From: Pavona decussata
Taxonomy: Eukaryota
DNA length: 64,000 bases
Assembly: GCA_977016875.1 (NCBI GenBank)
Contig: CDRNST010000104.1
Coordinates: 2,790,001 to 2,854,000 of the forward strand
Reading direction: 5' to 3'
The notes under the pieces: model-generated
The model's database searches: none
Seen by the model: the letters and a program-made list of their open reading frames with translations, nothing else
What the model was told of the DNA's origin: nothing
Shown here: one piece after another, positions 11,423 through 62,916 of the stretch
How positions within the stretch are numbered: position 1 is the stretch's first letter
How the letters are laid out: every line of letters begins with the position of its first letter
Program-made: the position numbers and the translations under genes

Positions 11423-12119
11423 ATGGCAACTGCAGCAGCATCTTCCAAGGAGACAACCAACTATGCTCGGTTGTGTCGTCTGTTGGTGGATGTCGGTACC
11501 CAAGCACTGAGAGACCAATTCAATGGCATCCACTCACCATCAAATCTACAAGCTGTCTTGGCCGCAAACAAAGCTTCATTGCTGACGCTGAAAGCAAAGA
11601 AGATCATCAACCCAACTCAGTGGGACAAACTCTTTCCTGCAATACCTTCTTCAGTTTCATCAGCTTCTTTTGACATCACTCTGTTAATGGTCCTGTTTCG
11701 AAACATATGTGGTCTAGCTGCTCCCGCGTCAGGCTGGGACGCCCTTCCTCCCTCAACAGATATAAGTCCTGAAGCAGACATCGCTCGTGTGAAGTACTAC
11801 AGAAACACTGTTTATGCTCACGCCGAGCGTGCTTCTGTTGATGAAGCAACGTTCAACAGATATTGGAGTGAGATCCGAGACACTCTGGTGCGGCTGGGAG
11901 GAGTTGCCTATAAAGCAGCTGTTGACAATCTTGAAACAGACTGCATGGACCCTGATGTGGAGGAACATTACAAAGAACTTCTTCGTCAATGGAAAAACGA
12001 CGAAGACAACATAAAAGACGAGTTGAAAGAAATTGGCACTGACATAAAAAACCTCACACAAAAGATTGATGACTTGCTAGAATCCACAGTGTCTTCAAAT
12101 AAAGAAACACGTGTCGAAG
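11423..12119 (+). CDS. HEPN-TRIM-NHL copy 1, coding exon 1: DZIP3-like HEPN domain plus short coiled coil
   Basis: Acceptor ttttcttag| 31 nt before ATG with an in-frame upstream TAG; motifs NYARL, FDITLL..LFRN, DIARVKYYRNTVYAH (Rx5H at 11801-11821); donor GAAG|GTGGGT after 697 nt (phase 1). Confidence 0.85.
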
Positions 12120-12659
12120 GTGGGTTGTGTTACATTGTCAAGTAAATCCCAGTTGATATCCTAATTTGTACGAACCGTAGTTTATTGTGCAGTATCGAGG
12201 GTCTTGCAGGTGATACTTTAAGTTGGGGTGCTTGTGGGATCCTCCCATTTACCATCATCGCTGGGCACAGAGGTTTCCGGTTCTTTGTCAGTGAGACCTT
12301 TACATTGCCGGAACCGCACAGCGTAATGTAAAATTGGCGGACGAAACTCGCGAGAAAATTTCAAGTTTATGTCCTCAGGAAATTATTGAAAATACAACTA
12401 GACATAAATAGAGCGTCCATCCAGATGTCCACATTACAAAAAAAAAGTGTCCCGTTTGTGCATGATTAAAGCTTTTGGCATCAGCATATAATCCACAAAC
12501 GTAACAAACTTGGCGCATTCTATAAAACCAAATGACAACAACCACAAGATATGTAGTTCATTTGTCCCGTGTTTAAAGAGTATCGTGAAGGTTACCTGTG
12601 TTCAGGAATGACTGTCTGTTCGATTTAGAAATGACACTTCCTTTCTTTTTTTTTTCTTT

Positions 12660-13060
12660 TTTGACAACAATTTTTATTTGCCTTACATGACAGCACATTT
12701 ACAGTACTGAACATTACTAACATTTCGTACAATACTCACAATACTAACCACAATAACTATATCTACATCGTTAACAACACTTACTATACTTACAATACTA
12801 AAATAACTTACAATGTGCATGCTACATGGAAGAAAAAAAAAGAAAAAAAAGGAAAGAAAAATACACTCATTTGGGTCTAGACAGGAGATAAATTGTAAAT
12901 AGGTAGAAATAACAATAATAATAATACGGGATGGTGTGATAGGAGTGCGACCGCGTCAGACTGTGCCAGAAATAAATTTTTTTGAGATGAAGGGTTGCCA
13001 TTTGTTGCTAAAGACAGTGATAGTGTTATTTTTAGTGGATATAAATTGTTCTGTAAGGGC
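12660..13060 (-). mobile_element. Probable non-LTR retrotransposon 3' tail fragment in the copy-1 intron
   Basis: tttattt followed by degenerate (acaatact)-like repeats; not present in the paralogous introns. Confidence 0.35.
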
Positions 13061-13379
13061 TTTCTCACGTAGTTGTATTTTATAGAGCTTCCTTTCTAAC
13101 TGCAATGGAAAAGTATGACAAGGGGGGAAGCTAACTGCTCCTCAGCCGACCCCCAACTCTCCTTGCTCTTCCCTGCTTATTCACCCTTTAATGACGTGCT
13201 TTATTCTATATAATATATTCTATATACGGTGACCCGAGATTCGTTTCAGACACGATTATGCAGAAACCATTACCCGCTGATAATTTTAAAAGATAAAAAA
13301 TAAATGTGATTGCGAATAAATGCATCGTGTTAATGATATGGACTACAAATGCAAGGAAACGTTGATGTACTTAATTGTT

Positions 13380-13637
13380 GATCGCTACTGTGATCAGATC
13401 AAACACATACAAGGTTTATGCAATCTACCGGACATTTTTATTAATAACAACCCACCTTCTACTGCAATGAACAAAGAATATCTCACCCATACCGTGCGTG
13501 TTAACACAAAGATAATAGACAACGATGATAATTGGAATTTAATACTACTATACAAAGAAGCCTACCATATCAAGCGTTCAGCACCATCTTTGAACAATGG
13601 TTTAAAAGCTAGCAGAGAACTATGCCTATTCTCCTGA
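13380..13637 (+). mobile_element. Penelope-like element fragment (C-terminal part of GIY-YIG endonuclease)
   Basis: Peptide KIIDNDDNWNLILLYKEAYHIKRSAPSLNNG matches the E-x(2)-I-x(4)-P-x-LN end of PLE endonucleases. Confidence 0.65.
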
Positions 13638-14074
13638 CATTTACGTCTTGTTTTGTATTTTCATGTGCATGAACTGGTTTTCACCTTTTGTAACACCTTA
13701 AAGAAAATCGGGCTACCAAGTGCCATGGACAATAGCCATGTGTTGTTGAATATGTGTTCGGATGACAGGAAACTTGTAGTCTCGAGATCTCGAGAGGAGC
13801 AAGCAACCCGCCACTCTACAAAATTTGATGACATGGATGACAGAGGAAATGAAATCTCGCTAGCGTGCGAGCAACAGCCCCCCTCCGGACAACAAGCACT
13901 ACACATCACGCAGTACATTACGTAAACAAAGCAAACGACGAAGGAAAAATAACTCCTAACTGAATAACTAGTGTTGGATGTGCAACAGTATGACCCACTG
14001 GCCAGATCAGTGTCAACAATTGTCAGCTCTAAATAAAGATGAGCGTCTTTAATAAAACCATGAAGGATAATCAT

Positions 14075-60001: not shown

Positions 60002-60123
60002 TCGCGCCAAACTCTCTACATGACTCTGCGTGCGAATACTTCATTAGGATCACATATTTTCGCTTTTATTTGTCTCTAAGGAATTCTTTTACATTTATAT
60101 TCGTTTTCATTTCGCTCATCACT

Positions 60124-60162
60124 GACTTGATAATGACGTTGAGCAAACGTCGAAACGTCGTC
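60124..60162 (+). ncRNA. Minimal hammerhead ribozyme motif in the Penelope 3' UTR
   Basis: gac-UUGAUAA-u-gacguu(gagca)aacguc-GAA-ACGU-C-guc: stem I, core with U3-A8 covariation, stem II, palindromic stem III, GUC cleavage triplet. Confidence 0.65.
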
Positions 60163-60239
60163 GCTTTTTAAACTTTTAAACCAAGATGGTTTTAAATTTT
60201 TTAAAGTTTTCAACATTATCGCAATTTTTTATAGTTAAA

Positions 60240-60592
60240 GCATTAATCTATGTATAAAGTAATCTATAGGGGATATATAATAAAAAAACTATTCTAATAA
60301 CTATATGTGCAAAGCAATATTTTAGACTGAATAATGGCATCAATATAACAAAAGATATTGTTCCTTTAGACTTGATTTAAATTTTGAAAGAGAGCCACTT
60401 TTGATTTGTTCATTTATTGCATTCCAAATCACAGGTGCCTGAAATTTTATATTAAATTTGCCATAGTTTGGTCTTACTTAAGGGAGGTAATAAAACTGGT
60501 TTGCAGCAGATCTTGCGTTATATTGATTAACTTCGCAGACCTCAGTAAAAAAGTTATTGAACACAAGAGGCAATAATCTATTCTTAAACTTA
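60240..60592 (-). mobile_element. CR1/L2-like LINE fragment; its 3' tail lies at ~56277-56560, split off by the Penelope composite
   Basis: Minus-strand peptide NYGKFNIKFQAPVIWNAINEQIK; aataaa plus (ttg)n tail on the minus strand at 56277-56312. Confidence 0.6.
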
Positions 60593-61144
60593 TAAACAAA
60601 TCCTCATGAAAGACTGGCATTTAATAGAGCAACAACCATTGCGCAAAGAAATATACGAAGCACTGTCACTCTTGTATGCAATAAATTATGATTGCTTGTG
60701 ATGATCCTCGCTGCCCTACTGAGAGTGGTTCCATTTTAAATGCGTCGGACTTGTGGATACACCAAGTGGAAAGTGTCTATGCACTGAATGTGCTGTTTAA
60801 CATTTTCAAAGCTATCACTGTTCAGAAATGCTCTGTTGCAATGTGAAATTCATATTCTTGTAAAATTTAATAATCCGCATCAAGTTTTTAAAGTAATTTT
60901 GTTCCTGATCAATTCAGTGTGAATGGCTTCTTTTTGTTTTGTTTTGTTTCGAGTTTTTTAAATCCCTTGCCAATTTGTTCCAAGGGGGAGGGGAATTTCA
61001 TCTCAAGATTTCCCCCATGGGCTGGAGGTTTTGGTATGATTTGATCAGGGCCTTTGTCAAATCGCCCTTATCTTTCCTGAGTCCAGAGGGGTGGGGGACT
61101 AGTACATTTCTTTACTTACCCTTTTTATACTCGATTTCCTCAAG

Positions 61145-62916
61145 GTAAAATATTCAACCCAGAGATGTCGTTCGATACCTCTTTGGTGTGCCGAGAGAAA
61201 CATCACGAGAGTGAACTTCTTACGTCATTCTGTGAACAGTGTAAAGTGTGCATCTGTGACAAGTGTGGGCAGACACGTCATAGTCATCACACCAAAGTAG
61301 ATATCCACCAAGCCGCGAAGGAATGCAAAGTTAATATAGAAGAGATTGCAGAAGAAATGAAGAAACAAGTTGCTGATTTCCAGACACAAGTGGATAGGTC
61401 TAAAGAAAGGACGAGGAAAAGCAGAGAGGAAATTGCCGCAGCTCGAAACAAAGCATTAACATCTCTTGAGGAACTAATACAGCTTTTAAAGAAGCATGAA
61501 ACAACTACGATGACCAATTTAGATCTTCAGGAAGAAACAGAGTTAAGAGGTCACGCGACACAACTGGAACACTTCCAGACTTCCATCAGCAAGTTACAAA
61601 AATCTGTGGAGTATTGTGAAGCCATTTTACAAAGAAACGAAAGTATTGAAATTCTTCAATTGCATCAGCCTCTCGTCGAACGGTATCGAGGCCTTCTAAA
61701 CGTAGAGAAACTCAACATTAATAAGGCGATCCATACAGCATTGCACGCCAGGTATGAGATCAATGACGAGCTTGTTGAAACTCTGAGATCCGCTGTTCCA
61801 GGTCGACTAGTTGTTAGTAACACGGATCATTTGCAGTCAGTAGCAGAAGGAAAAGGCTTGAAAGAAGCAGATGTCGGAAATGAAGCTGAGGTTGTGATAA
61901 CAACAAATAATTCCAATCAAAAGCGGTGTTACGATGAAGATGATCAGATTATTGTGAAAGTAGAGACACCATCAGGAGTGCAACTAAATCACAACATCAC
62001 TAACCGCAAAGATGGTGAATACAGCGTCACCTACACACCAGATTGTGTTGGACAGCATGACATTGTGATTGAAGTTAACGGTCAGCCGCTGACTCGTACT
62101 CCATGGAGTCTCCATGTGTCTCCACATCATTACAGACGATTGTACTCGTTTGGGTCCAAAGATAAAGCACAAGGACAGTTTGTTTATCCCTGTGACATTG
62201 CAATAGATGAGAACACAGGAAACATTGCAGTCGCTGATCTACTTAACAATAGGGTGCAGTTGTTTAGTTCAGAAGGAAAACCTTTGAACACTATAAATGG
62301 GAAAGAAATAATTAATCCCAGTTCAGTAGCATTCACCAGATCTAGTAACCTTACGGTCATTGCTTCTGGTAAGATTTTTCGTTTTAATGAAAGCGGCAAA
62401 GTAGGTAAAAACATCACTAACAAACACTTGAAGAAACCATGGCGCTTGGCTATTGCACGTGATGGACGCATGGTGGTGTGTGACGAGGGTGACAATACAG
62501 TCAAGGTCCTGTCCCCTGACGGTACACAGCTGTTACTCACCATCAGTGATCCAAACCATGCGAGACCGTGGTCCGCCGTTTCTCATCAGGACATGTTTGT
62601 TGCCTCCTATTACTCGACAAATAATGTGAAGGTATTCAGCAAGGATGGAGTGTTTCTTCATAGTATCGGTACATTCGGGTCTGGTGACGGACAGCTGCGT
62701 TCTCCTACTTCCCTCTCAGTTGACAGGTTTTCAAACCTGGTGGTGTGCGACTATGATAATAGAAGGCTTCAGATTTTTACACTTAATGGCAAACTTGTAA
62801 GCAAACTGGAAGGTCGACAGACTGGTCTTGTTCGTCCGTATTCTGTTGCGGTATCATCCACTGGACAGCTGTATATAACTGACATAGTAAAATACTGTAT
62901 ACATGTTTTCCAGTGA
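61145..62916 (+). CDS. HEPN-TRIM-NHL copy 3, coding exon 2 (B-box, coiled coil, filamin, 6 NHL); spliced product ~822 aa
   Basis: Acceptor tttcctcaag|GT gives G-K-I-F-N-P-E-M; intact B-box; uninterrupted 583-aa ORF. Confidence 0.88.

Follow-up and report, generated by a model that had tools for sequence, protein, structure and literature searches.

A lineage-expanded family of two-exon HEPN-TRIM-NHL genes in the stony coral Pavona decussata and its putative ligand-assembled RNase

Does a HEPN domain encoded kilobases upstream of a TRIM-like reading frame belong to the same gene, and what would the joined protein do? The question is raised by the window analysed here, a 64-kb stretch of Pavona decussata contig CDRNST010000104.1 (C104), in which three pairs of open reading frames (ORFs), all on the + strand, each consist of a HEPN ORF followed by a TRIM-like ORF. 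The gene structure and the architecture of these HEPN-TRIM-NHL genes are secure: each pair forms the two coding exons of one gene. On balance we favour the view that the three copies belong to a lineage-expanded two-exon family whose product would act as a HEPN RNase assembled by its ligand.

Gene structure and joining of the HEPN and TRIM exons

All six ORFs of the ORF list lie where the original prediction had placed them, with the HEPN ORFs at 11423-12145 (copy 1), 26038-26760 (copy 2) and 49028-49975 (copy 3, open upstream to 49028 and with the conserved Met at 49253), and the TRIM-like ORFs at 18400-20127, 29332-31083 and 61165-62916. In every copy a phase-1 donor, GAAG|GT (the vertical bar marks the exon boundary), falls exactly 697 nucleotides (nt) past the conserved ATG, and an acceptor of the form (CTCAAG or CTTAAG)|GTA(A/G)AAT ends exactly 20 nt 5' of each TRIM Met, both as had been claimed. 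Joining the two sites creates a split codon and the predicted in-frame sequence E-G-(K/R)-I-F-N-P-E-M in every copy. Coding exon 1 spans 11423..12119, 26038..26734 and 49253..49949 in copies 1 to 3, 697 nt in each case, with the donors TCGAAG|GTGGGT, ATGAAG|GTGAGT and CCGAAG|GTGAGT, respectively. The introns, anticipated at 6.3, 2.6 and 11.2 kb, measure 6260 nt (12120..18379), 2577 nt (26735..29311) and 11195 nt (49950..61144); that of copy 1 has GT..AG ends, a pyrimidine-rich tract and the AAG acceptor, and that of copy 3, enlarged by insertions, shares islands of similarity with the copy 2 intron. Exon 2 occupies 18380..20127 (581 codons), 29312..31083 (589 codons) and 61145..62916 (589 codons), and its product in copy 3 is 84% identical in amino acids to that of copy 2.

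Searches, alignments, ratios of nonsynonymous to synonymous substitution rates (dN/dS, omega) and structure models were all run exon by exon. A Pfam profile check, which the original prediction had proposed, matched all three HEPN ORFs to PF18738 (HEPN_DZIP3) over the full profile (1-144/144), at 207.8-214.7 bits against a cut-off of 27 and with expect values (E) of 5.7e-64, 3.6e-63 and 7.6e-62 in copies 1 to 3. The Rx5H motif is RNTVYAH in all three, and a long C-terminal helix completes the copy 1 exon; in copy 2 the domain lies at 26152-26586 and the motif at 26416-26436. Exon 2 encodes a B-box, a putative coiled coil, a filamin domain and an NHL propeller, which in copy 2 are preceded by a six-codon leader and closed by a stop codon, the B-box being placed by Pfam at 29353-29469, the filamin domain at 29989-30273, and the six-bladed propeller, by Pfam together with an AlphaFold2 (AF2) model, at ~30304-31077. 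Filamin (E 1e-17 to 1e-19) and NHL exceed their Pfam cut-offs in all three copies (1.6e-17 and 5.8e-15 in copy 1), zf-B_box, with a cut-off of 24.1, scores 27.6 and 26.8 bits in copies 2 and 3 and gives no match in copy 1, and TRIM_CC scores 17.8-21.7 bits in all three, below its cut-off of 30. The expected domain order, HEPN-helix-B-box-coiled coil-filamin-6xNHL, is found overall but with a damaged B-box in copy 1. Pfam detected no RING family in either exon of any of the three copies, and no NACHT or NB-ARC domain in them.

The splice signals are not a product of chance: of the 13 close paralogues found in this genome, 12 repeat the 697-nt exon 1, its phase and the donor and acceptor signals, across introns of 1.4-11.2 kb. 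In these 12 the donors read AAG|GTGAGT, GTGAAT or GTGGGT and the acceptors yTyAAG|GTA(A/G)AAT, and in most copies the acceptor itself (CTTAAG|GT) supplies an in-frame TAA, so that the TRIM reading frame is open only from the splice site onwards. Past the donor, the read-through tails diverge in both length and sequence between the paralogue cluster on C104 and that on a second contig, C273.

Homologous fused transcripts of other corals support the joining of the HEPN and TRIM exons in one mRNA, as far as sequence comparison can indicate it. An mRNA-like contig of another coral (L001, 2969 bp), with AATAAA just before its end, encodes an uninterrupted 822-residue protein (P0053), of which residues 8-234 correspond to the HEPN exon of copy 2 (77% identity) and residues 240-822 to its TRIM exon (66%). 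The DNA of this contig is collinear with the two exons in each of the three copies, leaving out the intron, and joins them at GAT G|GA AAA ATG CGG AAC CTG GAG ATG. This junction corresponds by homology to the 23-nt leader in Pavona, and therefore points to the upstream AAG acceptor as the one used. An 830-residue transcript product (P0139) likewise equals the sum of two genomic ORFs, P0396 (242 residues, ...SSDG|GELRYFC followed by a stop) and P0397 (601 residues, MIFFGL|ALSAS...); in P0396, which is of Orbicella type, the donor position and the read-through tail are the same as in the Pavona copies, and the Orbicella-type cluster, formed at 90% identity, contains an Orbicella faveolata RefSeq 'TRIM2-like' protein. 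For Pavona itself, RNA mapping relied on short Logan contigs, with paralogue reads at least 90% alike co-mapping; in the RNA-like runs X1 and X2 both exons of copy 2 are covered and its intron is almost empty, which is weakly suggestive of splicing.

An in-frame CAG stands 18 nt 3' of the AAG acceptor (in copy 2 at 29327-29329, from which the exon would start at 29330). As the main acceptor it was rejected: the CAG is lost in the six C273 paralogues and AAG|GT is kept in 13/13, and the homologous mRNAs hold the six-codon leader upstream of it. In the C104 copies the CAG may be used occasionally, giving an isoform six residues shorter.

A conserved HEPN cassette on a fast-evolving TRIM-NHL body

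The motif RN.V[YF]AH is present in 16/16 paralogues (13 close and three distant). Of 68 aligned family members, 61 retain R127, 62 N128 and 64 H133, while R122 is invariant; R127, N128 and H133 are kept in all close paralogues. The AF2 model of copy 2 exon 1 is all-alpha, with a mean predicted local distance difference test score (pLDDT) of 90.5, and places a 47-residue helix (177-223) after the domain. DZIP3-type HEPN domains have been described as putative RNases (PMC3710099, PMC8260672, PMC9646362, PMC13012124), with a motif that is 'mostly conserved' in the DZIP3-like family according to Anantharaman et al. (PMC3710099). The vertebrate protein DZIP3/hRUL138, which gave PF18738 its name, has a HEPN domain of the same Pfam family (matched by the coral domains at 208-215 bits) but combines it with TPR and RING (PMC3710099), whereas the coral HEPN domain replaces the RING on a TRIM scaffold. 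With RNase L/Ire1 KEN, Cas13 and Csm6/Csx1 the coral domain shares the Rx4-6H motif and, in its model, an all-alpha make-up; the relation would be one of superfamily level only, and a different regulation is proposed for the coral family.

Rates of change differ along the protein. By the Nei-Gojobori method, applied to the 12 intact close paralogues, omega is 0.24-0.30 for the HEPN domain, 0.10-0.18 for the B-box, 0.22-0.31 for the coiled coil, 0.44-0.55 for filamin and 0.57-0.92 for the NHL propeller, and 0.10-0.21 (over few sites) for the six-codon leader before the Met. The HEPN domain is under purifying selection and the NHL propeller is fast-evolving. The AF2 model of the copy 2 propeller has 24 strands, that is, six blades (pLDDT 92.7). 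With loops assigned from the DSSP string of this model, paralogue entropy is 1.15 bits in the d-a and b-c loops versus 0.46 bits in the a-b and c-d loops (Mann-Whitney p = 4e-6), with the strands at 0.59 bits. Propeller convention assigns the d-a and b-c loops to the 'top' face, the one through which Brat and LIN-41 bind RNA; judged from topology alone, the variable loops of the coral family would lie on this face.

The TRIM body has its nearest solved relative in the PDB in the filamin-NHL part of TRIM71 (E 6e-42), followed by TRIM3, TRIM2 and Brat. Like the TRIM-NHL proteins TRIM71/LIN-41, TRIM2, TRIM3, Brat, Thin and Mei-P26, the coral proteins have a B-box2, a putative coiled coil, a filamin domain and a six-bladed NHL propeller. 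They differ in having neither RING nor B-box1, with HEPN and a long helix instead, and in their tandem expansion, hypervariable top-type loops and single-exon body. The nearest HEPN-less paralogues (L015 and L016, 41% identity) are single ORFs of the order RING-B-box1 (ANCHR-like)-B-box2-Filamin-NHL, and since these carry both a RING and a B-box1, it is these two domains that the HEPN exon replaces. The original description of HEPN in place of the RING is thereby borne out within the same genome. Both paralogues, the two examined in full, come from a separate tandem cluster at 6.2-6.6 Mb of C104 (L015-L017) with at least ten canonical single-exon RING-Bbox1-Bbox2-filamin-NHL genes; because of this cluster on the same contig, the TRIM-NHL body is lineage-expanded in its own right.

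The HEPN exon also occurs on other bodies. In the same genome, phase-1 xxG|GT HEPN exons stand upstream of an NB-ARC/TPR body (L018) and of NACHT-LRR bodies (L023, L027), and these cassette exons stop at a phase-1 donor shortly past a conserved WKKDED helix. The arrangement fits an N-terminal effector exon that has been shuffled onto different large single-exon sensor bodies. DZIP3-type HEPN is known as the N-terminal module of NOD-like receptors (NLRs) of cnidarians, bivalves and amphioxus (PMC8260672, PMC9646362, PMC13012124), and fusions of HEPN_DZIP3 to TPR, RING, ankyrin, CARD, NACHT, DEATH and LRR have been recorded (PMC3710099). The HEPN_DZIP3-NACHT-LRR and NB-ARC-TPR types thus resemble the present family in HEPN subfamily, in its N-terminal position and, in this genome, in the phase-1 cassette exon. 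They differ in the sensor scaffold, which here is B-box/coiled-coil/NHL, not a signal transduction ATPase with numerous domains (STAND NTPase) with LRR or TPR.

Expansion of the family, its window neighbours and its relatives in other animals

The 602-Mb genome holds at least 112 HEPN_DZIP3-like matches, and every TRIM body at least 70% identical to copy 2 has a HEPN exon on the same strand 1.4-11.2 kb upstream. The original prediction had spoken of a tandem array of three; three genes do stand in the window, but they are part of a set of 13 close paralogues (12 intact) on two contigs, to which more distant members can be added. Seven of the 13 are on C104 within ~180 kb, namely the three in the window, two + strand genes further downstream and two genes in the - orientation, and the other six are on C273. 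Three distant HEPN-TRIM pairs (38-39% body identity) have phase-1 G|GT donors, and broken HEPN or TRIM pieces were found on contigs C201 (~596-599 kb) and C85 (~4.91 Mb). Similarity between copies 2 and 3 starts ~3.7 kb upstream, covers both exons, takes the form of islands within the intron and reaches into the 3' flank, so that the unit duplicated was the whole two-exon gene. Within the copy 3 intron, at 56782-57315 on the - strand, lies a GIY-YIG ORF (E 2e-5), which may be what is left of a mobile element, Penelope-like or other; insertions of this kind account in part for the 11.2-kb length of that intron.

Two other features flank or interrupt the array. A 483-residue ORF at 6466-7917 (+), with matches to CN_hydrolase (E 2.4e-16) and Vanin_C (E 8.5e-31), marks a vanin/biotinidase-like gene, apparently of one long exon, that immediately precedes the array. 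Between copies 2 and 3, in a GC-richer stretch at 44-48 kb, broken ORFs at 44789-47577 (-) with RVT_1 and RT_RNaseH matches mark a decayed retroelement.

RefSeq and Logan contain fused proteins of 805-834 residues from at least nine other stony corals. Annotated proteins of 787-834 residues with PF18738, B-box, Filamin and NHL come from many corals, among them Oculina patagonica (at least 12 proteins), Stylophora pistillata, Acropora digitifera, A. millepora, A. muricata, A. palmata, Montipora capricornis and Orbicella faveolata, and the fused architecture is also encoded on many JGI and Logan contigs of 2.6-5 kb. Annotation calls these proteins TRIM2-like, TRIM3-like, TRIM71-like or 'uncharacterized' and passes over the HEPN domain. 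The literature searched, with most subscription journals outside its coverage, held no description of HEPN together with TRIM, B-box, filamin or NHL. The earlier statement that no characterised protein of this architecture was known stands for the literature searched, but such proteins are already annotated in corals and in the hemichordate Ptychodera flava. The family is uncharacterised, while its building blocks and the habit of HEPN_DZIP3 of fusing to immune scaffolds are already known.

The Ptychodera protein, a 'TRIM2-like' sequence of 817 residues (XP_070546620.1, P0318), has HEPN_DZIP3, B-box, filamin and NHL in the same order as the coral family. Its TRIM body, by contrast, shares no more than 20% identity with that of the coral family, below the 41% of the coral RING-TRIM paralogues, and because of this an independent fusion in the hemichordate, and with it more than one origin of the architecture, is likely insofar as sequence identity is a guide. 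An ancient fusion shared with Ptychodera was considered unlikely on the same comparison.

A candidate sensor-effector mechanism and its alternatives

A conserved effector-type domain, a hypervariable face, tandem birth-and-death and a cassette shared with NLRs look like what is expected of an innate-immune sensor-effector family. In the mechanism that we propose, the variable propeller face would be a ligand sensor for non-self RNA or protein, and assembly through the B-box and coiled coil on a multivalent ligand would bring HEPN domains together. Once paired, the HEPN domains would cut RNA in the manner of other Rx4-6H HEPN enzymes, with an antiviral, anti-transposon or cell-suicide response as the outcome; NLR oligomerisation, which activates N-terminal effectors, offers a parallel. 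Such a ligand-gated RNase is plausible by analogy with HEPN enzymes, with TRIM5/TRIM21 and with the induced-proximity logic of NLRs. TRIM5alpha and TRIM21 would be comparable in their B-box/coiled-coil scaffold, N-terminal effector and fast-evolving C-terminal recognition domain, and would differ in that the coral effector is a putative RNase instead of a RING E3, the sensor is NHL instead of SPRY, and clustering is proposed by analogy.

Several points weigh against this reading. TRIM coiled coils are antiparallel, which places the two HEPN domains of one dimer far apart, and activation would for that reason need higher-order assembly. A Foldseek search of the HEPN model against the PDB returned no match at E <= 0.001, and a sequence-profile search of the PDB gave no solved relative of the DZIP3-family HEPN. 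The top 50 of 48,161 chains in VIA-align do include Csm6 (Z 6.5 and 5.6), the AF_0298 HEPN protein (5.1), MtlR/YggD (4.8-5.1) and a Cas nuclease (5.0), with all of these scores within the noise range of helical bundles. We know of no demonstrated RNase activity for any DZIP3-family HEPN. Not every copy is in good order, either. Copy 1 has a 24-nt in-frame deletion after nt 18477 that removes KVCICDKC (eight residues, three of them Cys) from the B-box, which is why it has no zf-B_box match; its body is the most diverged, at ~71% identity to copy 2, and the gene is possibly in decay, or its product may assemble differently. L004 (C104:2952900-2959300, minus strand), with an AAAG|GT donor, has a frameshift near the N-terminus of its HEPN exon and is probably a pseudogene. 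Finally, the copy 2 junction 26734>29312 was not among the 15 of 36 joints listed for this species from short Logan contigs.

This last result, together with the TRIM ORFs each having an ATG of their own 20 nt past the acceptor and with acceptors of the rarer AAG type, is what could be said for HEPN and TRIM ORFs as separate adjacent genes with coincidental splice signals. We reject this explanation as extremely improbable: fused transcripts and gene models share the homologous junction in many related corals, 12/13 paralogues agree fully in exon length, phase and signals although their read-through tails diverge, the leader upstream of the TRIM Met is constrained, on few sites, and duplication has always carried both exons along with introns and flanks. 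A different objection accepts the fusion as real and takes HEPN as a non-nuclease module for RNA binding, dimerisation or adaptor function, which would make the protein a scaffold or a regulator. The lack of enzymology and of a solved relative for DZIP3-type HEPN, the weak fold match to catalytic HEPNs, a family motif that is 'mostly conserved' (PMC3710099) and the absence of R127 from 7/68 aligned sequences all speak for it. We nevertheless consider it unlikely, in view of R-N-x4-H in all 13 close and three distant paralogues, the purifying selection on the domain, and the retention of N128 in 62/68 and H133 in 64/68 sequences.

The ligand could also be the coral's own mRNAs, bound by NHL and cleaved by HEPN in a regulator like TRIM71/LIN-41 or Brat and not in an immune sensor. 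The ranking of solved body relatives, headed by the RNA-binding filamin-NHL of TRIM71, agrees with this. Developmental TRIM-NHL proteins, however, are conserved and present in few copies, whereas the coral family forms tandem arrays on two contigs with pseudogenes among them, has an NHL omega of up to 0.92 with hypervariability confined to the putative ligand face, and shares its HEPN cassette with NLR-type genes. A role of this kind seems quite unlikely to us, and the ligand-assembled HEPN RNase of an immune family is the reading that we keep.

Taken further, these proteins might be cytosolic pattern-recognition receptors of animals that have gone unrecognised, in which the hypervariable NHL face would recognise RNA of viruses or transposons, or proteins of viruses, and the resulting TRIM-type lattice would switch on the HEPN RNase in an abortive-infection-like response, with independent origins in stony corals and hemichordates. 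We offer this broader idea as a tentative one, doubtful as a whole. If true, it would provide a eukaryotic counterpart of Cas13, Csm6 or RNase L on a TRIM scaffold. TRIM proteins are regarded as RING E3 ligases that are switched on by target clustering; a natural family with an RNase-type domain where the RING normally sits would make the TRIM scaffold a general induced-proximity platform. The phase-1 HEPN exon shared with NLR-type genes illustrates concretely how an effector cassette is shuffled from one class of receptor to another. RefSeq names such as TRIM2-like, TRIM3-like, TRIM71-like or 'E3 ubiquitin-protein ligase' mislead for these RING-less proteins, which affects how coral expression studies are read. 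For corals, whose antiviral immunity is poorly understood, the family would represent a sensor of nucleic acids or pathogens that is independent of NLRs.

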